Positions 18,501-64,000 of a DNA stretch of 64,000 nt are shown here, one piece after another. The notes below the pieces were generated by a model that searched no databases, was not told the origin of the DNA, and saw only the letters and a list, made by a program, of their open reading frames with translations. A program made the position numbers and the translations under genes. Positions within the stretch are counted from its first letter, which is position 1. Every line of letters starts with the position of its first letter. Source of the DNA: Lytechinus pictus (lineage: Eukaryota); assembly GCF_037042905.1 (NCBI RefSeq), contig NC_087249.1:47430001-47494000 (forward strand). Direction: 5' to 3'.

Positions 18501-21500
18501 TTCTGTGTCACCCTGGCACGTTCCTCCGTTCGAACACACGGGACCAATGCAACCAAGTGCTAAAATATGAATAACACACTGTTAAAACTAGGGTGTTAAA
18601 AACTACACCAGTTGGTGTCTACAGAGGAGCACATTTTCAGTTGTTAAATTACACCCTAGAGATTGAACATGACACCAAAGAAAGTAACACCATTCAACAA
18701 TTTAATCATCACCACCATTTTTCAATTTTTAGTTAATCCCTTTATTTTTTATAAGAAAACTAAAAACGTTATTATAACTAAATAAAATGGAATCTGATGA
18801 AAAAAAGTACCTCACAAACACACAAGCACACCCTCACACCAACATACACCCCATGCTGAACATTTTAGTTGCGTAGAAGACACAAAATATTAACATGGGC
18901 TTTTGATTTTTATGAGAGCATACAAATAAAACTGAGAGGGGGAAGATGGTGAGAGAGACAGATACATGAGACAAAGAGAGGAGGGTGGGGAGAGAGAGAG
19001 GTGGAGAATGGAAGTTTCTCTCATTTGAGTGAATTCCGAATAGAATATACCAAAATTAAGATCGAGTAAAGAAGAAATCTTGAAATCATGAAGCAGGCAA
19101 AGAGGGAAGAGAACTTGAAGCTCAATCTATTCAGCCTTTTCCTTAATTTATGTTTTCCGTTGGGAATATAGAATACGGTGTACACTCACCGTAGCTTAAA
19201 ACAATAGTTTCACCGTCCAAGATGGCAATTGCAGCATGACAGTCTGTGGAATATGCCGATACGTCAGCGCATTAAAACTTACCCGTTTGACATTCATCTC
19301 CAGTGAAGCCCTCACGGCACAAACAGGTGTAGAACTCAGAGACAGCGACGCAAGTTCCTCCGTTATCACAAGGACTAGAGCTCCAGCATGGATGAACTAA
19401 TTCGTCAAAAAGGGAGAGAATATCAATACTAATTCTTTCTCAATCGTTGTGATTCCACATGATTCGGGCTTTTTCACAGACAGGCTGCTCCTATCATTGC
19501 AAATTTGTAATNNNNNNNNNNNNNNNNNNNNNNNNNNNNNNNNNNNNNNNNNNNNNNNNNNNNNNNNNNNNNNNNNNNNNNNNNNNNNNNNNNNNNNNNN
19601 NNNNNNNNNNNNNNNNNNNNNNNNNNNNNNNNNNNNNNNNNNNNNNNNNNNNNNNNNNNNNNNNNNNNNNNNNNNNNNNNNNNNNNNNNNNNNNNNNNNN
19701 NNNNNNNNNNNNNNNNNNNNNNNNNNNACTACTCCTACTTACTCCTTTTACTACTCCTACTCCTACTACTACTACTACTACTAATATTAATGATAATAAT
19801 AAGAAGAAGAAGAAGAGGAAGAGAAGAGAAGAAGATGATAAGAGTGAAGAAAAATATAAACAAAAATAGATTAAGAATTAGAACAAGTATGAAAGTGATA
19901 ATTATACTACTGATGATTATGGTGGAGGTATGACCATGATATTATAATGAGAAAAGGGACAAGATCAAAGAGAACAAGAAGGATATATTACCATTTTCAC
20001 ATAAAGGACCAGTGATGAGGGGTGAACTGCTGATACATTCTGCTTCAAAGGAATCACTGACTTTGCAGAGGCAGTCATTCTCGCATGGATTCGGTATACA
20101 TGGATCATCTGAAATATAAATTAGAGCACACTCTTAACATGTTGGGCAACACACTGTCCACACAAGATTTGGTTAAAAACCTTATCCAACTCTGGATATT
20201 TTTCAACCAATGTTTAGTATTCACCCAAATCACTCATTATTGGTTTAAAACTTCCCAGAATTGGATAAAGTGTTAACCAATTGTTGTGTGGACAACATTT
20301 TTAAGAGTGCAGAGTGATACGACGACGACTACTACTACTTCAACTACTACTGCTACTTCTACTACTACTACTACTTCTTCTTCTTCTTCTACTTCTTCTT
20401 CTTATTCTTCTACTACTACTACTACTATACTATACTACTACTACTACTACTACTACTCACCGCCGCTACTACTACTACTACCACTACGACTACTACTACT
20501 ACTTCTGTTACGTACTATTATCATTATACCTGTACAAGCACCTTTATCCTTATTATACATACATGAAACAGATATATTGTTTTATTACAAGACAGTAAAC
20601 ATTATTGTTATTCTACGGCGTTTAATGTGGGGAAACAGATTAATTGCGTTAGCGGTAACTTTCAAACAAGAATGCAATTCGCCTGGGGCCCGTTTCATAA
20701 AAAGTTACAACTGTTGTAACTTTGCCATTATGGCAACTACTATGGAAACGGCTCAGCAGCCAATCAAAATCAAGGTTTTCATGGTAGTTGCCAAAATGGC
20801 AAAATTACAACAGTTGTAAGTTCTCTGTATGAAACGGCCCCTGATGGCTTGCAGCATTTTATCACCATTTTTGCGGTCAGGAGATGACAACATATGACAA
20901 TGGATAATTTGGGTGAGTTTTATGTGTACGGATACACTATTGTTTAACCATAGTTTAGCTTACGAACATGCTCCTTTTATGAAAACAAGAAATGTTGTGG
21001 CCCAGTGGATAAGTCGACGGACTTTGGATCACAAGGTCCGGGGTTCGAATCTCACCATGACACTCGCGTTTTTTGGCAAGGCGTTTAACTACAATTGCCA
21101 CTCTCCATCCAGGTGTAGTAAATGTATACCAGAATGTAAGAAGGAAATCCATGAATGCTCGAGCAGTCCTGATCAGGGTATCCGTGCTAAAGCCGGGGAT
21201 AAGATGGAGTGCACTTATATTAGAACAATTACATTGAGCACGTACTATATAAATGTTATGGAATTTACGTTTACTCACCAATACCGCAAAATAGTCCAAC
21301 ACTACCGGGAACACAGTCGCATACGATTTCATTGCTGACCACACTACAGGCCCCTCTCCCATTACAAGAACTGGTCAAGCAAAACTTCACGGCTGAAGTA
21401 AAATTGGAGGTCAAAATGTATTATTTATAGCAGCGGATTATGCAAACCACTCTTATCTAACACCATTTCGAAAAATTGTCGGATTTATCCATATACTACA

Positions 21501-24500
21501 AAAGTACTACAGGTTACCTGCTTTTTAGGCTAATTAAAATGAAAAAAAAAGTTCTAAAGGTAGGGAGAGTGCGAGCAGATGGGGTCGTACTGTGTAGTGA
21601 GCCAGAATGCACATAAACCAAAATGTTTGGGGTTCCTTAATAACAAGAAGGATCAACATCGAAAGTAACTAACACAATCCCACACCAATCCCGTATAAGC
21701 GTTTTTGGAGGGGATCCAATGGGTCGAATTGACAAATGTTTGATCATGGACATGACGGAGCTTTATTGATGGGTGAACATAATTTGACAAGCAGTAGCAT
21801 AGGGCTGACCAAAACGGACGACATAGTCTTATTTCTTTTTCAGCCTTTCCGGGGCCTCACCAGCCAATTATATATTTGAACATATACATTGTGATTCCAC
21901 ATCAAGTCTAGATTTAAGACAAAACATTTAACTTAGTTTGCAATGCTTATTAAATGTTAATACAGTTGAAATTGAAGTTTTGCTACGTGCTTGTCACTAG
22001 TTCCCATGTTCTCATTAACACACATACAAATATTTTACACGTAAACGCCCACACACAAACAGGCATGCATCATATAAAGAAAGCTAGAAAAATATCATAT
22101 ATATACATACGGAGAATGTAATGAATATACATATATATACATAAACACACATTATAACAATAATAAACAAACTAATACAAAAAAATCGAAGAATGCTCAC
22201 AAATTTCACTCTGACTAGTTTCGTTCTAATTTTTCAGAAAGACACTTTCTGAATTATTGAAACGAAACTAGTTAGAGTGAAATGTATGAGAATTCTTTGA
22301 TTTTCCTTCTATTAGTATATTTATCACTTTATTTCCTTGGTGGAAAACACATTTTCATTATTTTGTGTGATGGTGTGTGTATATTTATACTGTGAAATAA
22401 ATGACAATCACAAGAGCTATCATCCCTTTTCGAAAGAAAAATGTCTATGTGGGTAAAGGAGAAGAAGTAATTGTTGAGTTTGAAGATCTTTTTATCTGTC
22501 TGTCAATTGGACGAGGGTTTGCCAAGCCGTAACCCGTTCATAATTCATAATTCATTGAAAATGCTTAGCATTAATCCTGATATATAAAGCATATTAATTT
22601 TCATGTTACATTGATTGGCCTCTTGACATTTGAGCTGAATTGAATTATATATTCATGAGGAAAGTCTTCCTAATGAATAGACATGAGTCATGAATATTAC
22701 TGGTCACATAGTAAACATGTCAAAGGTGTTTCGTCCTAGTAGTCCACTATTCTGCATGGGATTAATTTAATTGCGGGACACTAAAGGGGATATAACCAGC
22801 AAAATGCTACAAGTAGTGGTACTACTACTACTACTACTACTACTACTAGTAGTAGTAGTAGTAGTACTAGCCGTAACAGACCCATCACCGCCCCGAAACT
22901 TCCCGGGAGATCGGCCTGGTCAGACTCGAGTCAAGGGGAAGCACCACTAACTGCACAACTCGACTCCAGCATTCCCTCACTGCACCGCGGAGATCGATAA
23001 TCGACGCATATTGGAATCGCATGAAAGATTACATTTTTTCCATATCCTGTGGGTAGATTTACAAAAACATCTCGTCTTTTCAGTGAAGATTTAATTTCAA
23101 CGACTTGCAAATCCTTAAATCGGTCACTATTTAGCATTTTAGAGGCATATTCAAATGCTCTTTGATATTTCGTCGTCACTCTTCGCCAAGAATCCACGGG
23201 TCGCCATTCAAGATGAGCTCATATTCAATATGTCGTCATAGCAGCCCGCGCTCTCATTGGATGATTTTCACCGACCAGGTTTTGGTCGGAATATTGGTAA
23301 AAACAATAAAAAACAAAAGAAAGTCGGTGAAATTCCATAGACGGATCCAGGGGGGGGGGCCGGGCCTCCCCTATTGGCGGAGCAAAAAAAAAGAAGAAAA
23401 AACGAAAGGAAGAAAAAAGGGGAAAAAGGAGGGAAAAGAGAGGAGATAAAATAAGAGTAGGGGAAAACTTGGAAAATACAAATAATCTTTCATTATATAA
23501 AATTTTCGCTCGCGCTTCGCGCTTGCATTGACTGTTAGGTGATTTTCATATCTTGTTCGATATGGAGTTTAGATATAAAGTTTGGAAGTCAATATATATA
23601 ACATATTTCACCTCGGAAATCGAACTTTCATTATTTTGTGTGATTTACAAATTGTTTTTAAAAAGTGCTCTGTAAAAATGTCAGTTTTATGGTCTGAATA
23701 TTAACATTTTCTGCTCGTGCTGTGCGCTCGCAAATTTTGATTTATCAGGTACCTATTATTTTCCTGTGTTCCATAAAGTTTTCAAAATATCCCTTTTCAG
23801 GTCTGATTGTCTAAACGTATCAGCTAGCGCTGCATGCTCGCATTTTGATTGGCGAGTTATGTATGTCTCAATATTGATTATACAACAAACTACTTAAAAC
23901 CCCATTTTCATGACAGTTTAATCAAAATTTTTGGCTAGCGATTTGCGCTCGCATTGATGGTTGAAATATATTAACTTGATGCATCCTATTTATAATTACA
24001 AAAGTGCTTGAAATGTCCAGTTTTCAAGCCATAATAACATCAGATTTCGTGCCCTCACTAGGCATTAATAAATAAGATATTGCTTTGATAATTAAAATGT
24101 CCCTTTTGTTTCATCTCTCACTTAGCAAGAGGAATAGGACGATAGTCATCATTTTCATAATTATGCATGTCCTAAGGATGTCCCGGTCCTATGTTAAAAC
24201 TCAAAGTAAAAACATGAATAATATTAAAAATATTAGCTCTTTATTAAGTGCGATCCATATCCACCTCACAATTTTCCTACAAAGTGCTTGCAATTTAAAG
24301 CTGAAATTGACTCTTTTTTTCAGATCGGAATATCAAAAGGTTTAAGCTCGCGCTTCGCGCTCGCTTTGATTTTCATGATAAAAGATGTATTTAGAATGCC
24401 AAGAAGATTCTAGGTCTGAATATGAAACACATGCACGCATGTTTATTCAGATAGTCAACGTGTTCTCTATTAAATCATTATCCAGTTTCAGATCACAATA

Positions 24501-27500
24501 TCAAAAATTTTCTGCTCGCGCTTTGTGCTCGCATTATTAATGTAGGAAGATCCCCTATTACTCATTCTTTTCATGATTTACAAAACATGAATAGTGTCAC
24601 GTTTTTAGGTGTAAATCTCGATTTTTTTTCCCGCTCGCTTCGCGCTCGCATTAATTGTTTAGTTATATACTTATCCTGTTCACGATTACAAAAATTAATT
24701 AAAATTTTAAATTCTTTATGTAGAAATGTCAAAAATTTTCAGCTCGCGCTTTGCGCTCGCATTATTTATTTATTGAAATATGTAACGTTTTCATGGCTAA
24801 GTGCTAGCAGTCTTTAACAGGTACATTTTCGATCAGTTCAAAACGTATATAAAAAATTTCTGCTCGCGCTCTGCGCTCGCATTATTTATGTAAGGAAGAT
24901 CCCCACTTACTCATCCTTTTCATGATTTACAAAACTTGAATAGAGTGCCTCGTTGAGTAGGTCTAAATCTCTAATTTCCACTTGGTCTAATTTCTATTTA
25001 GTCTAATTTCCACTTGGTCTAATATCCAATTGGTCTAATGACCACTTGGTCTAATGACCAGTTAGGCTAATCGTCACTTGGTCTAATTTTTATTTGGTCT
25101 AATTCACACTTGGTCTAATGTCCATTTATTCTACTATAGCATCATTCATTATTATTTATTTTATCTAGAATTAGCCAATATGATACGCAATGGATAAATA
25201 CCATGCATCAGTTAATACATATCGCCAGGATCCGGAGGGGTAGAGCTGGGGTAGAGCTGGTGAGCGCAAAACCTCACCGTGAAGTACTATCGATGACAAG
25301 ATAGTAGCTCATCAAAAAAATTATTATAATAAAATAATTCTCATAATTAGGCCTGTATATCGATTATAAGATGATGATAAAAATTACATCATACTCATAA
25401 TCATTACATCACCGCATGCACATTTACAGAACAATAAGTTGGGGACCTTGTAGCTTATAATGGTCGAATGGCGGGGTTTCATCAGAATAAAATTATTATG
25501 AAGAAAGGAACGAAAATATAATGTAATTGATTGTGTGGATACGTATCTGGTAAACATGTTTATGCCTCTTTTAAATCATTGTTATGCACCATTACGGACG
25601 ATACTTGAACTTGATGGCCTAGTTATGCAGTTTGGGGGATTCCAAAACTCACAAAGCCACTAGATCATGCAATTTTGTTATGAAGATTTGTTTAGTTATT
25701 TCAATAGTTAGTTTGGAGGCAAATAACAGACCAGTTAGATATAGTTTGATAACACTGTACAGGTCTATTGGGTTAGCTGCGACAACATCACTGCGACCAT
25801 CTTGGTAGCAGCCACATCATTATGACGTGTAATAACATAGTATACATGTAGTCTACCCTTGCAGACCTTTATCAGTTATCACCACAGTAGTCATTCATCT
25901 TATATATCTTCGCATTCTGTTTTTTGTTCTACTTCTTCGCCTCTTCCTTAAAATGGATTGGCAAGGTTTCCACCACATCAGGGAAATAAAGGAAATCAGG
26001 GATTTTTTAAAACGTTTTTCCAGTCAGGGAGTCAAATCCGGGGAAAATTACTCAAATGAGGGCAAAATCAGGGAATTTGATCGGCCCAAAAGTCGAAAGC
26101 ATGATAGTCAGTCAGACTCTGTTATATTTTGTTGTATATTAAAACAACATTCATTGAATGACATGTTATGGTGGTTTTTTTTTGTGTAGCCTCTTCTACT
26201 ACAATACAAGTATAGGCCTACTGGTACACTATACATGCATAACTAAAATAATAATAATACATGTAATTCACTGCAACAACTTAGAAAACATGAGAAACTG
26301 GGAATGGGTTTAAATAATTATCAAGGAATTTTTCAACTTCATCAGAGAAAAATCAGGGATTTTTGTTTTCTTGAAAAGTTGGGAACCATGATTGGGTTAA
26401 GCCAGCGTTGACTATCTACAGTAGATCGTAAACATAGAGGTCGATAAATAAAAATCATATTTTTTCACCTCTATATTAGCGTTATTTTACATAAATATAG
26501 CAAATTTGATTGTTTTTCACCAAAACCTTCAAAAATCCCCTGAAACAGACAACAACAAAAATCCCCAAAGTTTGTTTAATCCCCAAATAATTTTTTTGGT
26601 CCCCACAGGCTTTAGAAAATCCCCATATTTTCAAAATTCAGTAGTGGACGAAATATACGTCACTCTAACTGTACTCCAATATCGAGGGGCGCGCGTGTGA
26701 AGATTCGAAGCCGGCGCGCGGAAAGTATAACTTTAAAAATTTCACCAGAAAATTGAAAACAAGTCACCATGCAGACTTTACAAATTAGACCAAATGGCAT
26801 GTAGACGAAATGAATGTTAGACTATCTGGAAATTAGACCAAGTGGAAATTAGACCAAGTGGCTATTAGACCAAGTGGTCATTAGACCAATTGGCTATTAG
26901 ACCAAGTGGCCATTAGACCAAGTGGATATTAGACCAAGTGGTCATTAGACTAATTGGCTATTAGACCAAGTGGTCATTAGACCAAAAGAGAATTGGACTA
27001 AGTGGGTTTAGCCCGAATGTTGTTAGCCCATCTGATATGATTAGACCGAGTGATAATAGACCATCCGCCAGTAAACCGTTGAGACAACACTGGTTTGGCG
27101 TTATAATATAGGTACACATTTAGTGTTAAACCATTATTGGTTTGATTCTTAACTGGTGTTACGATTCTCTGGTGTGGACTGATCCCGGGGGACTGATATA
27201 GATACCGGGCAGGTGTTAAATCAACACCGGTGTGTTTGCAGTGTATTGTCAATACTATTATTATTATCATTAATATTCTCTTTCGCAATTTATACAAATA
27301 GCTTCTGAAGATTCGGTAAAAAAAATCATTATTCAAAGAGATTGTCGGGGAGATTGTTCATGTTATGCACCAACTGTTAAATTAACAGTCATGATTAAAT
27401 CAAGGAGATATCTCATGACGATGCGCCGGTCTGCCAAGCACGACCAAGGGCATCCAGGTTCCTCGCTCACGGAGTAATTCCAACGGAAGGAGGGCGGTGT

Positions 27501-28397
27501 CAATGTACTATCCACCGCTTCACCGGGCCGCTGCATATGGCTACACAAGTCATGTACTGCACTTGTACTGCACTGCACATGTACATGTACATAATAATCT
27601 CACGCTACAGCGCTATATACTTCTCCCGATCAACGCATCATGTACCATGGTATGGCTACCAACCGTGAAAATCCCAATACTTGGTAATGGATGTGCTGTT
27701 CTTGCTTTTATCTTTCATTATAATTCCATCATGTAGCAATCAGTTTTTAGCAGGACAAGGTAAGGTATATATGGTAGCGATAATGTATATATCTATATAT
27801 AGAGAGAAGGAAAACAATGGTTACTTTAAATAGTGAGACCTTGGAGTTGGAGATTTTGATCCATAGTCAGTCTATGCAAAATTCTGCTTTACACTGCAGG
27901 GTGACTGATCACAAAATTTAAACGCAACCCTCGGCCCTCTGGATGGTTACGTGTGTTAATGTTGAACTCAATGTTGTTGTTATGTTCTTGTGGATTTTAA
28001 GGCGTGTATACGTGAGTATCATCCGCGGAGTAGACAAGGCCCAGGCCTGCGTGGGGATAGGAGACAAGGGAAGGATAGGTGGATTCGAGGCCGGCGGTGG
28101 TTAGTCTTCTCTTCAGGCACAGACCCTGATTTATTTTTTATCAACAAACGGGTTTCACACGAGACAAGCACAAAAAAAGGACTGTTTCAAAATGGACCTT
28201 TAGTTAGTACACAAGGCAGCATATTAAGACCACCTTTCCTTTAATCATTTAATGATTTGCACAGCAAACTAATTTGGCAATACGACATTATAAACCAAAC
28301 CTTTGCCTTGGTTTTTTTTTATTATCGTATGTACTATGTTCATTCGCTTAATAGCCCTGTATCATTATTATTATAATTTTATATATATAGATATTAT

Positions 28398-28451
<54 letters not shown>

Positions 28452-31400
28452 AAAGAAATGGATGAAGAGAACAATGGTAGGCGTAGCTTAAATCAAGGTT
28501 CCCCAGAGCTATCTACCCTTTGGAAAAATTGGTGATGCCGAAAAAATGTCCCTGCCGGGAATCGAACCCGGGCCCCCAGCTTTGAACGCCGGTGCCTTAA
28601 CCACTAGACCACAGAGACGGGTTAGTGGCTAAGGCGACCCCGATCCGATTGACCGTCAGATAGACAGATTTTCGACACTATACCAATTATAATTTCCTTT
28701 GTCGGGTGAAGGTGGGTTTCGAACAATGACAAGCCGCCATGCTTCAGCTGGATCAAAGCTATTGCTTTGATACAGTACACGTATGGGAGAAAGTATACAA
28801 AATGTGTAAAGTTATACATGTACAACAGCTTTGGCAACTCTTTTATTTATATATATATATATGTACATTATTGTATCATTATTAGAAGATACCACAGGGA
28901 CCACATGGACACAAAGGTCATGGATTATCAAAGGATGAAATGTCGGACATATATTCAAACTCTGTCTATTAGCTGTGATCACTATTTTATGGGCAAAACA
29001 ATCAATAATCGTCAACTTGCACAGTAACTTTTTTAATGTTCCAACATAGTGCCTATAGGTTTTATATGAATATTAGATCATCTATCATAATATATTGAAG
29101 TATATTTGAGTTTCTTATTGTTTTATTCTATCGTACTATATTTAGTTTTCATTATCATTATTGCTCGTCTTGGTTTTATAGTTATATTATATACTTAATT
29201 GAGTTCGGTTCAGGTTTATTGAGGGGACGGGGATGGTCCTAATCTAATGTAAGGATCCCGCCCCGTGAATGTACCTAGTCACTTTCGCTACGTCATAATT
29301 GTGTTTCAATTGCCACGCAAACTTTCATGGCCCTGAGAAGGGGGGATGCTGCGGGGCTGCGTGAAGCACCATCAAAAATTGTCCTTGGGGTGCTGCGTGT
29401 ATTATATTCTCCACAGGCAAAACCACCAAGTATTCCGGAAGATGTTTAAAAATGGAAAATGTAGCCAAAATCACCTTCATTTTGTAGTGAAACCTTTTTT
29501 TTTTTTTTTTTTTTTGCTTTTCAAATTTACATCCGCACCCCACTTAAAATCCGTTTCCAGGGCCCTGCAAACTTTGATAGCTCTACAGAAATTGAGAAAA
29601 ATTATCTTTTGAGCCGTTCTCCAATTGACACTAGGCTTGACACCATGAAAAGATTGACAGTGGGGGAAGTTCACCCCGGTTTCAAACAAGAAAACACACA
29701 CGTAGAAATTAGATGATTTTGATATTAATGTTTATGGTTCCCATTGCGTCTTACAGCTATCGAGGGATCGCTGCGACTCGTCGATGGCCTTACATCCAAC
29801 GAGGGGCGTGTAGAAATCTACAAGAATGGTGAATGGGGAACAATATGTGACGATAGTTGGGATATATCTGACGCCAAAGTGGTGTGTCGTCAGTTGGGTA
29901 ACCCGGGAGCGGAGTTGGCATTCACAAGGTCGCTGTTTGGCGGAGGAGTCGGCAGGATCTGGATGAGGGAGGTACAGTGCAGTGGCACAGAGAAGTTGCT
30001 CTCGGAATGTTCCTTTAGTGATTATGACATATGTGACCATTCAGAGGATGCAGGAGTCAGGTGCCTGGTTGATGCTGGTAAGTTGGTCAGTTGGCAGCTT
30101 TGTGTTTTTGTGACGGAAGTTCCGTAAACGCTGAATATAACGTTATGACTAAAGTTCCCTTAGCTCACGTCGCGTTTAATATCATCATTGTTTTAATTGT
30201 TATGAAGCCACGATATTAGTCATAAATTCAGGTGGGCAGTGCGGCTCTACGCGTCTTAAATTTGTGAGGACAATAAATATACCAAGAACCGTTGTGAGAA
30301 TTTAGGGATGCAAGAGGCATGAAAACTATTCTCTGTCATATCCTCGCATTAATACTTTTTTTTTAAATTATTGTATTGGATTTAAGAACCGGCTGAGGGA
30401 GACCTACGTTTGATGGATGGCAATGAAACTAACCAAGGACGCCTAGAGGTTTTCTACCATGCCGAATGGGGCACGGTGTGTGGCAAGAAATGGGGACTAG
30501 CAGAAACCAAAGCAGCCTGCAGACAGCTTGGATTCAAAGGAGGAGCCTCCTTCAGCACTGGAACTGGATTTGGAGATGGAAGTGGCCGAGGGTGGCTGGA
30601 TCCTGTCGTGTGCAAAGGCAACGAGAATCGCCTGGAGGAATGTTCCAGAAGTGAATGGGTTTCATCCGAATGCAGCAATGATAAGAATATCGGTGTGGTG
30701 TGTCTACATACAGAAGGTTAGACCATTCTCGGAGGTCATTTCTACGGAAACTTAATTATTGATAAGTTATTATGTTGACATGGCGAGATACGTCCACCAG
30801 TATCTCACTATCTGCTTGGCAAGAAAATGTATTTCGTCATGGCGACATCTGGCTAGTCTGCTGGCACAGAATCTGATTGAAACTTTGACAGAAACTAGCA
30901 GATTAAAAATTTGCTATTTGGCCTTCAGTACAGAGTACAGAAGTCATTCTAGGCTGTGTATTCATCTCGAGTGAAGCGTTTGCACAGCAGACTACCATAC
31001 AACTTTTTATAAGACGACTTGGTGAAATAACGTATCTCTCCATGACGACCTACAACTTTTTATAAGTTGACTTGATAAGGTAACATATCTCGCCATGTCG
31101 ACATACAACTTTCTATATAGTCGGCTTAACAAGATAACATTTCTCGCGTTGTAAACATCGTAAGGCTACTAGGACGACTTGGTAAGACATATTATCTCAC
31201 CATGTTGAATAAAAGCACCATTATGTCGACATGGTCAGATAAAATATCTTACCATCTTGTCGGGTCGACAGCAGTTCAAACCTACCATACATTCCCATGT
31301 GAGGCAAAGAAAAAAAAGAAATACCACGGAGCAAGGGTTGATCAAAAAGGTAGAATGCTCCTACCTTCTTACACATTATTGGCGAAAGTAACCTTTGTTT

Positions 31401-34400
31401 CGATGGACAGGATAGGGTGTTCCTTTTCAGTAAAGATAAGAAAACTTATCAAGAGGTCTGCTACGTTATAACCAATTAACGATACATGTAGATATTCTTC
31501 TTTTTCAGTGTGTATTATCACATATCGTATTAACACACCAAATAGTAATTATGACATCATGAATAAAACTTGCAGGTACTTTGTCATATGAATGTTCCAA
31601 TGTAGGTCATCTTGGTAGTCATTGTTACGTCATTAAAGATATTAATACTGGCACCGTCTGAATTTTCATAATCTTGAGACACAGTAAAATACTGTTTTTA
31701 AAATTCTATACAATGCTGCTTACTATAATTATGTACCCTAGAGTAGTTGTTTAAGAGTTTACCCCTATAACCGCCAGGGGGGGGGGGGTGAATCAAACCC
31801 CCCTCGACATTTTCCGTGACCATTCCGCTGGGCGAAATTTTTCGCACGCGCCACTCGCTGACTTTTTACTTGGAAGTCTTGCATATCTTTTGAGCCCAAA
31901 ATAATTTACGATGCCCGGGTATGCGGTTGAAATATTTCGCAACATAAGGTAAGTGCATGTGAGACCCAAAATGCTCAAAAACATGATTTTGTGGACAAAG
32001 TCAATGTGAAGTGAGTTTTCTCATCTTATTCATACAGATATGGTTATTTTTACTTTCATCAGCTGAAGTTAATTGATTTTAGCATACTTATCCTTCATAA
32101 AGGTTCTGCTTTTTTTTTTTGGGGGGGGGGGGGGCAAAGAAAAACAAAAGGCCGAGAAAAAAGAAATACATAATTCATAAAACAATAAATTCATATTCAA
32201 ACCAGAGTGTTTTCATTTGTAATAGTTAGCAATGCTGTAAAGAATTTAAACACCAAAAATTAGCATTCTAGGAGTTTTTTATGAATTAGAGTAAACATAT
32301 GTTTTACGCATAAATTAGCATAACTAATTCATATTAAAATAAAATCTTAAAAGAAAAATCAACCACACAGCCTTGTAGATCACATCCCACACTATTATCA
32401 TGCTAATTTTCACGGCGTTCGCGCGATCGGCGGCCGAGATCTCAACCACCCCCCCCCTCCCCTGTCATATAATACCAAAAATAAGCCCGATCTGGTTAGG
32501 GTTAAACAAAAATGCTTAGTTCATTGAGAATTTGATACTAAAATCAAACTTAGTTTACAATTTGTAAACACTCGTTCAGACTGTTTAAGCAACAACTGCA
32601 AGGTTCATATACAGCGTTGTATAACAAAAATGAGAAACAGTGTCTTTACTGTGCATTAATTGTTCAGATGGAGATTCGCGCCTCGCGGACGGGAGCAGCC
32701 AAGCCCATGGGCGAGTGGAGGTGTATTACCAGGGTATCTGGGGCACTGTTTGCAACAGCAGATGGACCAAGGATGAAGCTGACGTAGTGTGCATGGGTTT
32801 GGGGTACGACGATGCAGCCAGGACCAGCGTCCTCAATGTCCCTGGTGGAAGCGGGATGATCCTCCTGGATGATGTGAACTGCATCGGCTTGGGGCGATCA
32901 CTGCGATCTTGCAAGTCTCGAGGATGGGGTGTTCATGACAACTGCACTCACGATGATGACATCGCTATTAAATGCAGAAGTGAGTATGTCATATTTCTTC
33001 TGTATCTTGTGGTATGCATTCGAGTATAGGTGTCTCTTTGTCTCATTTATAGTGTATGTATCGTTAGACTCCTTTCGAATTTTACACATTTATGCTTAAT
33101 TTTCTATAATTCGGTTATTTTAAGTTGGTATTGTTAAATAATAAATTGCAATGTACTTTGTAAATGTACATCATTGTTCAATTATTTTCCAAATCATAAA
33201 CGTAAGTATTAAGCGCTACTCAAATTGAACTTATTATGGTAATGTACGTTCATTACAAGATTAAAACAGACCGGCCTCCATAGATTTACGTAAAGAAAAC
33301 TACTCGTATGTTTTGAATCCGATCTCAAAAGTTGTAGACGACATCGAGGAAGAAATGTTGTGCACTCTGAAAATTAAAAAGAGTATAAGTTTTCAAAAGT
33401 ACACTAAAACAAACTTTGCAAGAAATAGTATAGTTGCATATATTATTGGATCCTGAAGTTTAATTAAATGGCATGAAACATTCGCAAAATAAGCTCAATG
33501 CATCTGTATATACAGTTGAAAAAGTCCTAATGTCTTGAAATCCACTGTTTTTTTAAACATATTTTTACTTGTGCTTTTGATTTGTAAATTTTAATACTTT
33601 TTTATTTATGTTTTTCCCTCGATATTGTTTTGTTCGTTTATGAACGAACTCCCTGAAAAAGACAAACATCGGCTGATCGTGGGCTATTTTACCGTGATTT
33701 GAATAAAATTGTCATCAAGTTGATACATTTTAAAATAATGGCTACAAAGATTGGACGCAGGGCTTTCAAGACAATCCTACATTTAAAAAAGCTGGGCAAG
33801 TAACAATATTTAAATAATACATGTATTATGTCAAGTTGATTTTAAATGATATCGTGTCAAGTTCATGCTAAATTTTATTTGATATTTTTCTTGTTTTCTT
33901 TTTCATACAGACAAGGGACCTCTGTCCTGGATACAAATAACTGGCATAGTTCTCGGTTGTCTAAGCGTTGTTATAGCCGTTTGTAAATGTTGTCTAAGGT
34001 GTCTCTTAAATGGAAGCTCAAATGCCACAACTGTTGTGGAATCGACGCCGGAAGGAACAACGCAAGACGGAGAAGAACCTGCTGCCGGTGAACCACTGAA
34101 TCCAAAGTCGGATACTTATGGAGAAAAGGTGTCACCGCCATCTTACGATGATATTGGACAGTTTCCAACAAAACCACAAGGAGATACCTCTGTGTGAAGA
34201 TATTAGACAACTGTAGATTACCACTGTGAAGAAAGTGTACTTTTCGAACCTGAAATTATGATAACATTATCTCCGACAGAAAAAAAGCCTCGACAGCTGA
34301 TTTAAAAGAAAAAGTTTACATCTTCTAGTAACCTAGACATATAATCTCCGCATGCTATCCCACTGCCCCAAAATGGAACAGCCAATTCGCTAAGGTAGGG

Positions 34401-37400
34401 TTTGTGTGGAATGGCAAAATTTATCGTTGTTGTAGCATGACATCGCCTTCGTGAAACAAGTCCAAGTTAATAAGTTCACTATGTATACAGTGAAAGTGCA
34501 AAATGGGTTTAACGAGCGCTTTTCTTTTTCATGTTTTCGCTTAGCAGGCAGAGCTGATAAAACCTTAATTTTGTTTGTGGAGTATTACTGATGAAGACGT
34601 GATAAGAGCTTGGTCTGCCGTGCTTAAAAACCCCTCATTACAACAGGCCGCCTGTGGGAGAAACGAATTTGGAGTGCGTCGCTAATTTTACACGACACTC
34701 GGCAAGCCAGTTGTTACTTTGAATACGAAGAGCGTATTCTACATCGCCTTGAGTTGCGATTACAGCCTGCCCTCTTCACGGTGAACGACTGTGATCTAAG
34801 AACCTTGTTCAACACTGAACAACATGCCTCATCGATGGGGAGACTCTTGCCCAGCTTGTTTAAATCTTGCCGGAAATTAATTCCTTTTTTTTAGTTTCTC
34901 AAATTCCAATAATAACTTATGAGTTATTTAGGCGGAGAGTTAGCAGATTATGTATAGTATAACATAGACGGAGAACAAGAAGGGGTGAGAAATGTTCACA
35001 AAGTCTTTTTTCAGAGACACACACCTTACTTAGGTAGGTAATAATCAAGCAACCAACTGTGTGTTTAAAGCACAAATTCGGATGGCAAATATTGTATGAT
35101 CGAAGGTCCTGACCAATGCAATGTCTTTGAAGATTTTTTTTTTCTGTATTTTGCCATTCAATTGTCAAATTCAAATTGAATAATTTCTTCCGTTTGATGT
35201 ATACACAGCGGCTGAAATTCCCCTTTTTTACTGGGATGAATAAAAACAATAACAAAAACACAATACCGTATGATTGTTTTAATGTTGAATTCATAAGGTG
35301 TAGTATGAAATGCTTGAATAGAGAAAATCAGACAGTCACAGCACTGATATTTCCATCAATATTCGATATGAAACAAAGGAGTTTTGGCAATGTCATTTGG
35401 GTAATTTTCACAAAACATTCAAATTCACATCCTGGTTAGTATGCAAAGCAGGGAGTCGGTTATGTCTCTCACACTCGTGAATTCTCTTGCATATTTTATC
35501 TGGAATACCAAATATTTCAATTTTCATAGATTTGATGATCAAGAAGACCTCCATCAAGTCACAAAATGAATTTAAAAAAATGAATTTAAAGACTGAATTG
35601 CATGTTCGATGAGGAGTTAAACTAGAATTTACATCATTGGAAGAAGATTTTTATTCGAGAATTACGTTAGTGGTTTTCATATTTGCACGTCTCCATTGAC
35701 GTGCATATCATTGTTTTCCGAAAAATAAGCAACACTTTTAAATTCTCATAACTTTCTTATTTTTGCATCTGTTATCGTTTATATTTTCAGTGTTTTGCTT
35801 GATTATATTAAGATATATTTATCATCAGTTATTTGATGGGTAAAACTTGATCTTTAACTCCTCAAAAAGCTTTGAGCACCGGAATCGATAGACTACCTTA
35901 GCCGGGGTAATAGAGTTCATTGAGCACCAAAAAGGTGGATGTGTGGCCTACATTGTTATATTTTCAAGGAAAGAGCGGGAGAAGGCTATGTAACATGGTC
36001 TCTCATTTGGAAAATGGTTCTCTTAATTATGGTTTGTTAGTTTTTAGTGCCTACACGAACATGCCTACCCCAAAATTGACCTTATATACTTTTTACAACT
36101 AAACAACTGTTTGACGGATCAACGCCAGATTCGATGCATGTAGCGAGTTAAGGCGATGATCTACTTTGCGTGGATTGTAATTGATTTAATTGAATATTGG
36201 GGATAAACCGATGTAAAACAATGTTATTGTATGATGTTCATTTGGTTCGTCAGTATTATCAAGTGTTTCATTATCAAGCATGATTATCCGAAATACCCCT
36301 TACATATTACCTATCAAACATTGTTCAGGACAGGGGCGGATCCAGGATTTTCTAAAGGGGGGGGGGGCACATTTTTCCGAGGAAAATTTGACAAGCACCA
36401 AATAAAGGGTTTAAAAAATATATATATTTTCCCCCCAAAAAAAATTAAAAAGCAAAAAAAAAAGGGTCTTCACTTTCAAAGGGGAGGGGGGCACACTTCT
36501 GTTTTAACGGCATTTTTGCATTACAGATTTTAATTTTGCTTCTCAATAGGGGGGGGGGGGGCACGGGCAGGCTGGACCCGCCAGTGGTTCACGACCATAG
36601 ATGAATAAGGTGTTTTGTTAAAACTGATTTCGTGGGGTGTTAGTTTTGGTAAAAACAAGAACAATTCTTGTTAACAAAAGTTAGTTCCTTTTTAGCAAAA
36701 TAATATCCAATAATATATCCATTCAAATTTCACATCATCACACTCACGTGCTCGTCCAACCACATTTTCACTTAAATATCTATATGAACATATGCAGCTC
36801 TGCAAAGTTAAAATTAATCCAATCACAAACATATACACACGCACACCCCAAACATATCCAACACACATTCCCACACACCCTCCCATATTCCCACAGACAA
36901 GTCCGGACAGTTGTTTTGGTTTATTTTCATTTTGTCCAATGCCGATTCGTTGCCAACTCGTCCTTAACATTTGGTCTACCATCAGTTCCTCCAATATCCA
37001 CGTGGTCTAATTGCCATTTCGTCCACTCACCCATTTCGTCTAATAACCAATTGTTCCAATATCCATTGTGTCCATATACCAGTAGGTCTAATTGGACAGT
37101 ATGAATGAAAACCAAAGGAATATTAGACCAACTGGTTATGAGACGAAATAGTCATAGACGAACTGGTGATTAGACGAAGTGATGATTGGACCAAATTGTT
37201 GTTAGACGAAATGTTGAAGGACGGAATGGCATTAAACTAAATGAGGGTAGTCCATGTGGTGAGTGGACGAGTTGGCAGTGGACGAATTGGCAATTTACCG
37301 TTGTTTTCAGGGATGGAACAGGATGGGTGCATTCCCATTGAATGCAGCGCACATTATGACGTGTGTCATTAGGGAGTTAACACACCACGATGCACGACAG

Positions 37401-37925
37401 ATTCAAGAACATAGAAAATCTATTGCCCTTCATGACACAAAAAACAACTAAGAAGTCTTTCTGATGAAAATGTGGTGAATCAAAACAGCAGTTTCGTGCT
37501 GAACTCTGGACAAATAACATATTTGTGATTTTTGTCAGCTTTGAAACTGAGAACGAAACTGCTGTTCTAGTTTACCAATTTTTGACAAAGACCTCCCAGC
37601 TGTTCATTGTCATTTGATGGGCATTATTTACTGAGTTGGTGAATCCGTTGTGCGTCACGAAGCGAAAACTCCATACTGTAACGCACAAAAAGCAAATCAA
37701 CAAGTAGAAATAAAAAGCAAACGAACGGCAATTATTGAGTTGGAGCTTACCAATTTCACAACGGTCGCCTGTCCAAGATGGGTCACATGTACAAGATATG
37801 GATGCACTAGAAAAGGATTCATTAACATCGTACGTGCACTCTCCAGAATTATAACAAGGGTTTACAGGCAAACATGGGTTATCTGAATAGAAAAGGGATT
37901 TTAAAATTCAATGATAATGATGATG

Positions 37926-37967
<42 letters not shown>

Positions 37968-40900
37968 CGTAGTAGTAGTATGAGCAGAAGTACTAGTAGT
38001 AGTGGTAGTGATTGTAATGAGCATAAAGTAATTTTCAATTTGTATTTTTATTTGGAAAACCATCATCTCAAATCATTTTCATGACCGTTCAAAACACTTT
38101 ACTTACATATACAACATGATCAAGGCTACAAATGACCAATCATTTGGTTCATATACACTTCGTCATCTTTAATATAGTTTCATATTTTTAATTAGAGGCA
38201 TAAATTGTGTTTTGAAAAGTGAGCCTACCAATATCACAAAAGGATCCGACCCAGCTTGGAAAGCAGAAGCACGCTGGTTCACCATCAATCACGGCACAAT
38301 TGCCATTTCCGTGACACACGACCTCGGCGGGGCACCACGGAACTTTTAAGTAAGAGATAGAAAAAGTAAGACACTGATCGATAATAAAATTATGAGAATA
38401 AGACAAAGTTACACAGTAACAACGCTTCACACAACCTGGAGTGTGTTTCATAAAACTTACTATAATAACAAATTTGTAATGACAGTTAAACTTGTAGTAC
38501 GACTATTTAAAAGAATTGTATCAAATAGCTTTAATCTCGTAAAGAACCCGAAGCTCATTTAGTTAACTAGGCTGTATAAAATATTTACACGCTGCTTAAT
38601 TTTGTTTCAATTGGTATAGATACAAATGATAAGCGCAGTTTTGATATGATCTGTATACTGGCCTACGTTTAACATAAGGGGAATCTAGATTTCAGACGTA
38701 CGTAAAATTTCTAATCAAACTGCTCCCAGATTTCCATTCTGATTAAGCAAACATATTTCTTAAACAAAGACATGACTAAGCGATTTCAACTATATTGCCA
38801 ATTACCCCTACCCCGGAAAAATGGGAATACGGACTTACTTTCACAGCGATCTCCGGTAAAATATATTGGACAGATGCACTTGCTCGAATCAATCAAAGGA
38901 ACACATGTACCACCATTCTCACAAATGTCGTTCAGAAAACATTCGTTAACTGAACAGAAAGACGAATAAAGAGCGGGAGAAGAGGATAAACAGATTGGGG
39001 AGGAATTAAGTACAAGGATGGAAAGTGAAAGAAAACGTATGAGACATGAGAAAAGGTAAAGAGAAGACGAGATGAAATGGGGGTAGAGATCGGGGAGGGA
39101 GAATAACAGAGAGGAGAGAGGAGGTATGAAAAAGAAAGAGTGTGTTATGTGTGAGAATAGAACAAAATATAAATAATTTATTTTGAGAACAAAAAATGCT
39201 GAATTAAAAATCACAAAAGGCATACGTCGGAGTTACATGGCAAAAATACAATAAAATTAGGTAACAATGGCAATGGAATCATATTATTATTGTTATTATT
39301 AATATTATTATTATTATAATAATTATTATTACATTATTCCTTTTTATATCATTTTGAAAGCATAACTAACTTTCATTGATATTTTCGACAAATAAAGTGT
39401 TATTTCGATACCCTGCTAAACGAAATTTGAGCGTATACTGATGGGGGTATTCGGTCGATCATTTCATTGCAAATTCTGCGGATCGAACTCCTCCCTCATT
39501 TGCGGTCAAGTGCACATGAGACTAGGTATCCACTTTGGTTTGGTTAAGGATGTGCAAAACCTATTTTTCAAACATTCGAAAATTCCTCTTTTTCCTACTG
39601 CGTATAAAGAGAGTTAACCGATTATCATTATTTATTATTAATATTATGATTATTATTCATTTTATACTTATTCATTAATTTGTTACCTATTTCACAAAAC
39701 TCCCCAGCGATATACTGCGAGTCGGTCGTACATACTGCAATCATGTTGTTATCTGCCACGCTGCACGAACAGTTATTCATGCAGGGACTCGGATTGCAAG
39801 GGTCCTCTGCGCAGAAATAAAATATATCATTGTTGAATTGTCATGGCAACAACTTATGATTTCTTATCAAGACTATCAATTTTCCTAAGAAATAGTGATG
39901 TGACTCTGACCCCCTTTATAATATCCGCCATCCCTTTATTTTGAGAAAAAAATAATGTGATTGGCAGTGACGTCATGAAATCAAAACTTTAATCATAACT
40001 CCGCATTTTTTGGGATTTTTATCAAACATTTACGAATATTCTTTTTCCTTTTAATTTTTTCTGATTTTATTAAAGGACAAGTCCATCCCCAAAAGTAGAT
40101 TTGAATAAAAAGAGAAAAATCCAACAAGCATAACACTAAAAAATTAATCAAAATCGAATGTAAATAAGAAAGTTATGACATTTTAAAGTTTGCCATGAAT
40201 TTCTTATTTTACATCCGAGTTCGATGAAATTCCCAGTGTTATGCCCTTTTGATTTTTCTCTATTTATTCAAATCAACATTTTTCTGGGGTGGACTTAACC
40301 TTTAATGGGTATATGAACAGACAGCCTTAATAATAGCCCCACCCCAAGTCCTAAACTACTCATATCTGACCAGGTTCATCACCCATCATGCAACAGTCCC
40401 AGACAAAGGTCTGAGCAGCGTTGTCTTGAACATAATATTATAGACCCACTTGAATGATGACACACTTATTCGCTATACTCATATCCCAGTACATTCAAGT
40501 CGCAATACCCATGTTGCCACGAAGCAAAACATGTACTTTTCCTTTCAATAACGGTCCATTTTCTCTGCAAAAACACCTGATTTTTACACATTATGATAAC
40601 GATTGTTACCTACCGTTTTCACAGAGTTGTCCTATGACACCGTCAGGGCAGTAACAGGTAAACCTATCGATTTCATCCATGCAAGTACCTCCGTTGTCAC
40701 AAGGATTTGAAGAGCACTCGTTAATATCTGTGTGAGGGACAGTAAGAAGTTTATTATCGACACTAAAATATCCGATCAACATCAAACCAACATCTATAGG
40801 GTTAAACACCAGCTTTCCACGTTTATTGTTTTCATCTTCAAAATTCTTTTACCAATATATCATTAACTTGCTTCCTCTCCCACATATATTTGAATAACCT

Positions 40901-41344
40901 GTCTATCCAAATACACCATCTTTTATCAACAGAAACATTCAAGTCCGAACATTCATCTCTCATTAACAATTTTATAGCGTATTGTATTCAGAATTTAAAT
41001 TTCTATTCTATTTCTATATTTCTTTTCTGTATTCAAGTGTATATTTTATTTCTTGAACAGCCATGAGAACCCAAAAGGTGGATATGTGCGTTATATAAAT
41101 CGCCACTATTAATATTATTATCNNNNNNNNNNNNNNNNNNNNNNNNNNNNNNNNNNNNNNNNNNNNNNNNNNNNNNNNNNNNNNNNNNNNNNNNNNNNNN
41201 NNNNNNNNNNNNNNNNNNNNNNNNNNNNNNNNNNNNNNNNNNNNNNNNNNNNNNNNNNNNNNNNNNNNNNNNNNNNNNNNNNNNNNNNNNNNNNNNNNNN
41301 NNNNNNNNNNNNNNNNNNNNNNNNNNNNNNNNNNAGAAGTCATG

Positions 41345-62573: not shown

Positions 62574-64000
62574 CTGTGCAGGTGTAAAATACATAAACTG
62601 TAAAAAAAAAGCTGCACTGCAAAAACGCCGGTGTTAATTTAACACAAGCCTGGTATCTATATCGGTCCACACCAGAGAGGTGTTGAAATAACAACAGTTA
62701 TGTATCAAACCGATATTGGTTTAAGACTAATTGGTGTTGCTTAAATGCCAAATTGGTTTTAGCCTAATGCCAAACCAGTGTTGTTTCAACACCTTTCTGG
62801 TGTGGACCGATATAGATACCTGGTTGCTGTTAAATTAACACCGGTGTTTTGCAGTGTAGGTTATTAAACTAGCACCAGTTGGGGTCTCTATGGAACCAAA
62901 CCCTGGCTTGTTAAAATGACACCATGGAGATTAAACACCATAGAATGTGGGATAGAATGTAAAAATTAAAACATAAATTCGTTGTACCATGGACCTACTA
63001 CACAGTAGTAGGTCCATGGTTGTACTAACACCCATTATAGGTACAGGACTAACACCAAATGTTTAACCTCGAAGTAAAATGACTGGTGTTGACATAAATG
63101 CACATAAATCAACATTACAGTTTTTGGTGTGTTGCAAAGTGAGAGATGAATGAATTCTGTCTGAACGAAAAAAAAAGAATAGAAGCAGGTTTATAAAGTT
63201 CAGGTATCTTGTATAAATGTTTTCTCGTTTTACTAAGGTGACTTGACGGGGTCCATGGATCTTGTGCCCTTGACTTTCGACCTCCCGCCAAAACTGACTT
63301 GAAAAGAAATGAATTATTCGAGTTGAAAAAAAAAACCAGAGACCCGTTTCATAGAGAGTTATAATGATTCATATAGAATTATCCACGGTAGCGTCACCAT
63401 TACGGCAAGTGCCATTGTAACAGGGCTCGGCAGCCATTCACCAGAGTACCATAGTTGTAATTCTTTTTCAAACCGGCCCTATAATTTGACTCATGTTCTC
63501 GTCTTGGTACAACTCTTCTGCTGCCGCACTGATAGTCTTGTTTTAATTTATATTTCACAGTTATTGTATTGTCTACAGGATAGTTTTCCCATTTCATCAA
63601 TTAAAAAGATTGAATACAGCTAGTGCCAGTCACCATTCTTTGAATCACTATTGCCTGTTTCGGCCGGAGAGCAATGGATTTGGTCAACTGATTATATTGT
63701 TCTCTGGCTGAGGCAGGTAGTGGTGAGTCTGGGAATTGTGACTGGTAGTGTATTTTATCTTTGAACAATTTTGTATTAGTGATAATTCTGATTTTAAATG
63801 TTATTGAATTCACTCATTACTGTACAGAACCCAAGTTACTCTTTTATCTATTATGTATATATTGTTATTTTATGTTAACAGGACCAGGCTGAAAAACAGT
63901 CAATCTGAGCCTGTTATACTGTATAAAAATATTTTAATAAATAAATAAATTTTATACTTGCATTACATACACATGCAATAATACATACCGCGTTCTCACT

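Follow-up and report, generated by a model that had tools for sequence, protein, structure and literature searches.

An SRCR gene and an EGF gene on opposite strands

The window, a 64,000-nt stretch of the Lytechinus pictus genome (NC_087249.1, positions 47,430,001 to 47,494,000), contains a minus-strand host gene encoding fn3 modules and, after them, about 37 EGF modules of one exon each and, on the plus strand, a gene with domains of the scavenger receptor cysteine-rich (SRCR) type (Table 1). The coding sequence of the SRCR gene (27687-34197) comprises five exons, with all introns in phase 1, and specifies 440 aa. A complete five-exon gene of this size and strand had been proposed in the preliminary description and was confirmed by Pfam domain matches, by an RNA contig, and by the RefSeq protein XP_054755205.2 (“neurotrypsin-like,” Lytechinus pictus), to which all 440 residues are identical; the gene model is already present in the public annotation. 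In a hydrophobicity scan, exon 1 ranked first among the ATG-to-GT candidates that had a good consensus donor, and its peptide agrees with the N terminus of the Lytechinus variegatus protein XP_041458223.1. The stop codon (34195-34197) is followed by a 3′ untranslated region (3′UTR) of at least 1.6 kb.

Table 1. Features of the SRCR gene and the surrounding host gene (slashes mark splice boundaries)
Feature	Position	Strand	Basis and remarks
Host exon EGF17	19992..20108	-	tttcag/ acceptor, AATG/gtaata donor; variant cysteine spacing as in EGF13
Host EGF exon missed in the preliminary description	21279..21392	-	114 nt, phase 1-1, six cysteines; use is a candidate, from sequence
Probable host intron containing the whole SRCR gene	21393..37750	-	16,358 nt, or seven times the length of the second largest measured
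SRCR gene exon 1, coding part	27687..27759	+	Start codon and 24-aa hydrophobic signal-like peptide; donor AAG/gtaagg, phase 1
tRNA-like sequence, anticodon TCA, in SRCR intron 1	28547..28618	-	ARAGORN; Rfam
SRCR gene exon 2, SRCR domain 1 (six cysteines)	29757..30077	+	Pfam PF00530, E 8.5e-30; AG/GT boundaries, conserved in L. variegatus (L001)
SRCR gene exon 3, SRCR domain 2	30387..30716	+	Pfam PF00530, E 6e-27
SRCR gene exon 4, SRCR domain 3	32668..32979	+	Pfam PF00530, E 3.4e-26
SRCR gene exon 5: transmembrane segment, 66-aa cytoplasmic tail, 3′UTR	33911..35812	+	Coding to 34197; RNA contig
Repeat-rich stretch between SRCR 3′ end and EGF16	36250..37650	.	RNA depth and variants
Host exon EGF16	37751..37882	-	Donor ATTG/gtaagc, phase 1; exon scan and RNA
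Host exon EGF15	38229..38342	-	Boundaries; spliced to EGF16 in raw RNA reads; present in X1 contig

A tRNA-like unit had also been described within the SRCR gene and was found in intron 1 on the minus strand, where ARAGORN predicted a 72-nt tRNA and the cloverleaf matched Rfam model RF00005 at 58.9 bits (gathering score, 29). The sequence is part of a repeat unit of about 400 nt (28449-28847; 399 nt) flanked by (TA)n. This unit had at least 113 matches in the genome, many full-length and others partial, at 95 to 100% identity and often in tandem; among five further copies inspected, two carried (TA)n on one side. It was missing from the orthologous intron at both L. variegatus loci, and the tRNA-like locus is thus a repeated copy that is not orthologously conserved. 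The three nested layers on alternating strands that had been noted are therefore formally present, although the innermost is one among many copies of a repeat that is both dispersed and tandem-forming.

Product and expression of the SRCR gene

In the predicted protein, Pfam profile PF00530 matched three stretches, each spanning profile positions 2-99/100 (E 3.1e-80 for the full protein), and each domain has exactly six cysteines. The N terminus contains a hydrophobic 10-aa window with a Kyte-Doolittle value of 3.35. A conserved hydrophobic stretch of about 23 aa after domain 3 is a putative transmembrane segment; the C terminus consists of a predicted transmembrane helix and a short tail. The tail motifs PPxYDD(I/V)GxFP and C-terminal GDTxV were invariant in four sequences, and the tail exon is single-copy in the L. 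pictus genome. Beside its SRCR domains, neurotrypsin has a kringle domain and, at the C terminus, a serine protease domain of the trypsin-like kind. The Pfam search of the 440-aa protein returned SRCR-type families only, with neither a trypsin nor a kringle domain. Judged by this predicted domain content, the RefSeq name is misleading because the protein lacks a protease domain, and it reflects SRCR similarity only.

Expression was evident from a 3042-nt RNA contig (depth 70) that spans 33911-35812 without a gap and splices 32979 to 33911 with GT..AG borders. The loose end of this contig before 32666 corresponds to 30685-30714, the last 30 letters of exon 3 and unique in the window, and therefore shows the junction of 30716 to 32668. 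The other 826 letters of the contig can be accounted for by exons 3, 2, and 1 together with about 104 nt of 5′UTR, implying a start near 27583. Of the four splice junctions proposed initially, two were thus seen in RNA, and the other two are consistent with the contig by length. A pseudogene was considered and rejected, given the intact open reading frame, a dN/dS of 0.30, and the depth of the contig. The evidence supports an SRCR gene that is complete, expressed, and spliced and runs antisense to the EGF gene.

Raw RNA runs X9 to X11, read at about 6%, yielded a handful of reads on either gene, too few for expression levels, and intronic coverage by host pre-mRNA was not detectable in this sample. 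The few raw reads in the SRCR 3′UTR had the first mate on the minus strand, and three reads on SRCR exon 4, each with two mismatches, had their mates oriented in an unexpected way. In the stretch from the SRCR 3′ end to EGF16, RNA depth rose to hundreds to thousands in all four runs, with many variant letters and loose ends, as is typical of multicopy elements.

The host intron and splicing of the host gene

The interval 20109-37750, previously described as a single 17.6-kb intron between EGF16 and EGF17, probably splits into a 16,358-nt intron that bears the SRCR gene and a second intron of 1,170 nt, because a further EGF exon appears to lie between them. This exon has a ttacttcag/ acceptor and a G/gtgagt donor; its Pfam EGF_2 match is weak (E 0.005). 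Its L. variegatus counterpart (L001:4064-4177) is intact with AG/GT borders and is 93.9% identical at the nucleotide level, versus about 82 to 85% in the surrounding intron. Counting exons in an EGF array without tools can evidently overlook a module. The small size of the other host introns, given earlier as at most about 2.5 kb, held for the 23 others measured (215 to 2346 nt). The flanking host exons are phase compatible as claimed, both the 37751 donor and the 20108 acceptor being in phase 1; this is not discriminating, because every host EGF exon is 1-1 symmetric. The asserted likeness of EGF13/14 to EGF17/18 was distinctive for EGF13 and EGF17 (47% identity and the same odd cysteine spacing), but EGF14 and EGF18, at 42%, did not exceed the background among the modules. 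A minus-strand open reading frame at 22931-23197 that looked helicase-like by eye had no Pfam match and was dropped.

On the host side, raw RNA reads of runs X10 and X11 joined 37882 to 38229 (CT..AC), the EGF15-EGF16 junction, with the first mate on the plus strand. A contig from run X1 covered EGF16 (37751-37883) exactly to its donor and carried 13 and 61 unplaced letters. The 61 letters beyond the donor had no placement anywhere in 32450-38449, which puts the next host exon on the far side of the last two exons of the SRCR gene. Among the reads and contigs inspected, in 6-kb stretches on one side of the intron at a time, none joined EGF16 to the exon at 21.3 kb or to EGF17, and no loose end at 37751 was among those listed. 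A search with the EGF16 open frame for transcript-derived fragments gave one candidate, which had no match. EGF16 probably splices to the candidate exon at 21.3 kb, and that exon to EGF17.

The SRCR protein is 91.6% identical to L. variegatus XP_041458223.1, all splice sites are kept, and the dN/dS of 0.30 against this species shows that the gene is under purifying selection. At the 27.9-kb L. variegatus locus L001, the SRCR gene (10001-17868, plus strand) lies within a minus-strand gene model whose product has 1668 aa and which extends past the locus at both ends. This locus is collinear with window positions 21038-40312, EGF13 to EGF16 and the 21.3-kb exon are all intact in it, and the 16,358-nt intron is collinear with a 16.6-kb L. 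variegatus intron. At the second copy, L009, the SRCR gene lies inside a 295-aa model spanning 1-24621. The nesting is thus common to both species, as the suggested check of synteny in related species asked. The two spanning models and the EGF16 contig of L. pictus support the placement of the SRCR gene between exons of one host gene; the whole SRCR transcription unit, from the implied start to the contig end at 35812, falls within one probable host intron. The original claim of antisense nesting stands in this respect, but the EGF16-to-EGF17 junction itself was not seen.

A quite unlikely reading is that there are two separate EGF genes, an upstream one with the fn3 modules and EGF1 to EGF16 and a downstream one starting near 21 kb, with the SRCR gene intergenic rather than nested. 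It would accommodate the missing junction read across the interval, the uniform phase of the EGF exons, by which phase compatibility proves nothing, and the division of the host at L009 into two models (506 aa and 295 aa). That division, however, falls on the upstream side of EGF15, away from the SRCR intron, and both L. variegatus models span the SRCR gene. Moreover, neither half of the window supplies enough EGF modules for the 1668-aa product, and the X1 contig splices EGF16 to sequence outside 32450-38449. An assembly or scaffolding artefact that placed the SRCR-bearing segment inside the EGF gene is extremely improbable: N gaps occur nearby, at 19512-19727 and 41123-41334, but none lies inside 20109-37750, and order and orientation are the same at two loci of the independently assembled L. 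variegatus genome, with collinearity from 21.0 to 40.3 kb.

Origin and meaning of the probable nested pair

The reciprocal-best homologue in Strongylocentrotus purpuratus, XP_795735.4 (“neurotrypsin,” 547 aa), is 66.6% identical over residues 20 to 440 and shares one domain per exon and the same transmembrane and tail motifs, but it has a fourth, N-terminal SRCR domain in one extra exon. Its neighbors are another SRCR gene and an F-box gene, and no spanning gene and no EGF exons were present within 10 kb on either side; the arrangement therefore differs between the lineages. Because the exon structure was kept, save for the extra first SRCR exon, the change of genomic context would be a DNA-level rearrangement and not a retroposition. 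The tail of the adjoining S. purpuratus SRCR gene maps to a different L. pictus chromosome. In L. pictus, the downstream flank of the S. purpuratus locus gave matches to dispersed repeats alone, and the F-box neighbor is therefore uninformative about synteny. A search with the SRCR tail region alone returned Lytechinus and S. purpuratus clusters only and no outgroup, and the direction of gain or loss was therefore not assigned. A third tail-bearing sequence (P0002), on a 24-kb ENA contig, had flanking open reading frames without Pfam matches, which settles nothing; an exact look-up of an older S. purpuratus sequence (P0007) returned no record.

Functional coupling of the two genes, in which the surface proteins would be made mutually exclusive or co-regulated either by host transcription running antisense across the SRCR gene or by transcription of the SRCR gene into the host polymerase, is also quite improbable. 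Convergent transcription over at least 8 kb permits polymerase collision, nested-gene interference has been demonstrated for some human host genes (PMC3192792), and the arrangement is retained in two Lytechinus species. Such retention in two close species is nevertheless expected from descent alone, the homologue in S. purpuratus functions with no host of this kind, and contigs of the SRCR gene (depth 70) and the host (depth 4 to 6) both occur in run X1, though the sample may mix cell types. A combined reading is very unlikely, in which the SRCR gene moved intact with its introns from an SRCR neighborhood into the EGF intron, in the Lytechinus lineage after the Strongylocentrotus split, and convergent transcription now makes the surface proteins mutually exclusive between cell types; if true, the locus would be a recent, datable nested pair that had acquired regulatory coupling.

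The locus is very probably a conventional nested gene pair, with the SRCR gene inside one host intron. The SRCR gene would be transcribed autonomously on the plus strand, starting at about 27.58 kb or earlier and reaching at least 35.8 kb, from a promoter and to a polyadenylation site of its own, and host pre-mRNA would be transcribed antisense through it, the stretch then being removed as an intron. Neutral co-residence of two independently regulated cell-surface genes appears most likely. The product would be a type I membrane protein in which a signal peptide is followed by three SRCR domains, each with six cysteines and its own exon, then by a single transmembrane helix and a short tail that bears a conserved PPxY/YxxPhi-like motif and ends in a T/S-x-V motif, and it probably acts as a ligand-binding, endocytosed surface receptor. 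In S. purpuratus, more than 200 SRCR genes form an expanded echinoid family with immune-cell expression, such as srcr142 in pigment cells (PMC5073156). The L. pictus gene likewise encodes an SRCR-domain surface or secreted protein of this family, of which it is a small member, single-copy, with three domains and a distinct tail; an innate-immune role may be suggested at the level of the family.

Nested genes are familiar in metazoans. PMC3192792, with reference to Yu et al. 2005, gives a figure of 158 nested protein-coding genes for the human genome and puts the share of nested genes on the opposite strand at about 63%; about 41% of human nested genes are single-exon (PMC3192792), and about 6% of Drosophila genes are intronic (PMC3786989). 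The L. pictus pair equals the opposite-strand cases in kind, an entire gene that has introns and a promoter of its own apparently lying inside one intron of a larger gene; its inner gene is multi-exon, and both partners encode modular cell-surface proteins. In the vertebrate LRRTM/alpha-catenin case (PMC3933685), a membrane-protein gene likewise lies in an intron of a larger gene, and nesting was gained or lost among lineages; the families here are unrelated to those, and the contrast is between echinoid genera with no direction assigned. The nested pair is real but ordinary, a clean, RNA-supported case of a multi-exon gene nested antisense in a sea-urchin host intron, with little significance beyond good annotation. 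Because two Lytechinus species have the nesting and the surroundings of the S. purpuratus homologue lack it, it could serve as a dated case of the origin of a nested pair.

The SRCR gene and its product

The preliminary description had placed a complete five-exon, 440-aa SRCR gene on the plus strand, nested within a minus-strand multi-EGF gene. The nested gene is real, and its structure is exactly that of the RefSeq model XP_054755205.2, to which our translation is identical at 440 of 440 residues. Three plus-strand open frames, at 29.7, 30.4, and 32.6 kb, matched the SRCR profile end to end (E values of 3e-26 to 9e-30), and the last exon codes for a predicted membrane-spanning stretch followed by a 66-aa tail. 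The first exon was found by scanning ATG-to-GT phase-1 candidates for a hydrophobic core, and its inclusion gives the protein its length of 440 aa. A search of 1.8 billion representative proteins with the tail exon retrieved a 440-aa protein with the same N-terminus and architecture, "neurotrypsin-like [Lytechinus variegatus]," whose 90% cluster also includes XP_054755205.2 of L. pictus. Pfam identified three SRCR domains, each with six cysteines, and found no protease or kringle domain in the protein; the "neurotrypsin" name thus reflects SRCR similarity only.

Coordinates of the features discussed in the text (positions in the window)
Feature	Position	Strand	Remarks
SRCR exon 1 (coding)	27687-27759	+	24 aa; donor AAG/gtaagg
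SRCR exon 2 (coding)	29757-30077	+	splice sites read directly; phase-1 joins
SRCR exon 3 (coding)	30387-30716	+	splice sites read directly; phase-1 joins
SRCR exon 4 (coding)	32668-32979	+	splice sites read directly; phase-1 joins
SRCR exon 5 (coding)	33911-34197	+	splice sites read directly; phase-1 joins
Candidate missed EGF exon	21279-21392	-	114 nt; phase 1-1; six cysteines
tRNA-like sequence	28547-28618	-	72 nt; anticodon TCA; SRCR intron 1
Repeat unit around the tRNA-like sequence	28449-28847		399 nt

Relative to L. variegatus, the gene has a dN/dS of 0.30 and a dS of 0.138, and all of its splice sites are kept. The tail exon occurs once in the genome, and its motifs PPxYDD(I/V)GxFP and C-terminal GDTxV were present in all four available sequences; the first reads as a putative site for endocytosis or WW binding (PPxY/YxxPhi), the second as a putative class I PDZ ligand. 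Sea urchins have a repertoire of over 200 SRCR genes (PMC5073156), of which the one described here is small and single-copy and has a conserved tail of its own.

The host EGF gene and its largest intron

The G+C content of the window is 30 to 41% per 2-kb bin. Single-EGF exons form a long minus-strand series from 57.6 kb to 3.4 kb, and all of the delimited exons have lengths divisible by three and are bordered by phase-1 introns. Fibronectin type III matches (Pfam, E values of 5e-9, 2e-4, and 7e-3) lie in minus-strand open frames at 59563-62697, 5' of the first EGF exon, and these modules probably represent the start of the host or of a gene just upstream of it. In addition, two minus-strand pairs of EGF exons about 2 kb apart (9587-9832 and 11610-11855; 10506-10928 and 12488-12757) have identical cysteine-to-cysteine core peptides; either a two-exon unit was duplicated in tandem very recently, or the assembly contains it twice. 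The proposed resemblance of EGF13/14 to EGF17/18 was borne out for EGF13 (39687-39806) and EGF17 (19992-20108), which are 47% identical and have in common an unusual arrangement of cysteines (C-x4-C-x3-C-x-C ... C-x11/12-C, lacking C-x-C), but EGF14 and EGF18 were no more alike than background.

The nested gene had been described as occupying a single 17.6-kb host intron among much smaller ones. The size contrast stands, with 23 other host introns measuring 215 to 2,346 nt, but a candidate EGF exon at 21.3 kb had been overlooked. Its sequence, ttttacttcag/CC GTG AAG TTT TGC ... GGT ATT G/gtgagt, carries CCGTGAAGTTTTGC..., and EGF17 carries ATGATCCATGTATACC.... The L. variegatus orthologue (4064-4177 of locus L001, one of two L. 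variegatus loci with the SRCR gene) retains the frame, the six cysteines, and both splice sites, and nucleotide identity between the species is 93.9% for this exon, 93.9% for EGF15, and 92.4% for EGF16, compared with about 85% for flanking intron. With this exon, the interval would divide in two, so that, judging from these sequence features, the SRCR gene probably lies in an intron of 16,358 nt (21393-37750), followed by one of 1,170 nt. Separately, open frames at 20913-21338 (plus strand), which adjoins the 21.3-kb exon, and at about 60155-60328 (minus strand) encode peptides resembling translated tRNA-derived SINE heads, in which GGTTCGAATCC reads as GSNP; neither frame had a Pfam match.

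Apparent nesting could also arise from an assembly artefact or from two separate EGF genes on either side of the SRCR gene. At L001, around XP_041458223.1, the SRCR gene (10001-17868, plus strand) lies within a minus-strand gene that has a 1,668-aa product and extends past the 27.9-kb locus at both ends. A second copy, L009, is on the same chromosome at a distance of 3 Mb (CM031015.1; 26.81 Mb for L001 and 23.82 Mb for L009), is 92 to 97.5% identical to L001, and has the same nesting, the SRCR gene being enclosed by a 295-aa model that extends over 1-24621. The SRCR proteins of the two copies are nearly identical, and the whole segment of host and nested gene is doubled, whether as a retained haplotig or by a recent segmental duplication; annotation gives the host as a single 1,668-aa gene in one copy but as two genes, of 506 aa and 295 aa, in the other. 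Between 21.0 and 40.3 kb, the window and L001 are collinear (about 72 to 88% identity in aligned blocks), and EGF13 to EGF16 are intact there with AG/GT retained. Both runs of N in the window (19512-19727 and 41123-41334) fall outside 20109-37750, which contains none. Together, the nesting at both loci, the collinearity, the intact exons, and the absence of N make an artefact or two separate EGF genes unlikely.

Transcripts of the two genes

RNA evidence was examined over 32450-38449, which covers part of the SRCR gene and part of the host. In RNA run X1, a 3,042-nt contig (depth, 70) covered 33911-35812 and 32666-32979, joined from 32979 to 33911 (GT..AG). The 30 loose letters before 32666 had a single match in the window, 30685-30714, directly 5' of AG/gttaga, indicating that the 30716-to-32668 junction is also present; the other 826 letters equal exon 3, exon 2, and 177 nt, compatible with exon 1 and about 104 nt of 5'UTR. 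The coverage and joints establish that the SRCR gene is expressed, that its transcript is spliced, and that the 3'UTR measures at least 1.6 kb.

On the host side, runs X10 and X11 had raw reads joining 37882 to 38229 (CT..AC, or GT..AG when read along the minus strand), and the first mate of these reads lay on the plus strand; the few SRCR 3'UTR reads had the first mate on the minus strand, as expected for a gene on the opposite strand. A 207-nt contig of X1 covered 37751-37883 exactly and had 13 and 61 further letters without a place on 32450-38449. Had the 61 letters been EGF15, they should have aligned as a second piece, as occurred in another record, and the 37882-to-38229 joint was absent in X1; they therefore probably follow the donor at 37751 and derive from an exon outside 32450-38449. 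The host intron would accordingly take in the last two SRCR exons at a minimum. At 36250-37650, which separates EGF16 from the 3' end of the SRCR gene, RNA depth reached hundreds to tens of thousands in all four runs, and variant letters, loose ends, and inverted joints were numerous, a pattern typical of expressed multicopy elements.

Repeat insertion, genomic context, and the nature of the nesting

The tRNA-like sequence in SRCR intron 1, on which ARAGORN and Rfam agree, is well folded with an anticodon reading UGA, and its acceptor, D, and T arms look like those of tRNA-Glu. Its position in the intron was correctly described, but as a third nested layer it is a recent arrival: the surrounding 399-nt unit has at least 113 genome matches (many full-length, others partial) at 95 to 100% identity, many of them head to tail about 405 nt apart, and is missing at both L. 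variegatus loci, where the orthologous gap holds a different repeat. The tRNA-like unit is thus a recent repeat insertion and not a resident tRNA gene of the locus. The window copy sits between (TA)n runs, and (TA)n was found on one flank in two of the five other copies examined.

The top Strongylocentrotus purpuratus match, XP_795735.4 (66.6% identity; 547 aa with four SRCR domains), in turn has its best L. pictus matches in the SRCR exons of the window. It shares the exon structure of the window gene with one extra SRCR exon, no relic of which was found in window SRCR intron 1, and the DNA-level alignment is limited to the four shared exons. At its locus it is flanked upstream by another SRCR gene and downstream by an F-box gene, with no spanning gene and no EGF-like exon within 10 kb on either strand. 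The tail of the upstream neighbor maps beside an SRCR cluster on chromosome piece C2 of L. pictus (49.31 Mb), unlike the window, which lies on C5. The two lineages thus differ in genomic context through the movement, at the DNA level, of an intron-bearing gene; the search returned no outgroup orthologue, and either lineage may be the derived one.

The preliminary description also proposed that the two genes might be co-regulated or mutually exclusive. Interference has been demonstrated for some nested pairs (PMC3192792), but the survey summarized in that source found the expression of nested genes and hosts uncorrelated, which fits a neutral origin. In X1, both RNAs occurred in one run (depth, 70 for SRCR and 4 to 6 for the host), giving no support for mutual exclusion, although the sample may mix cell types. 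Regulatory coupling has a low prior, and an ordinary opposite-strand nested gene is most likely. PMC3192792, citing Yu et al. (2005), puts the number of nested protein-coding genes in the human genome at 158, with about 63% of nested genes on the opposite strand; intronic genes make up about 6% of Drosophila genes (PMC3786989). Among metazoan opposite-strand nested genes, the window pair is of a common kind. The SRCR gene model is already public annotation, as is the nesting in L. variegatus.
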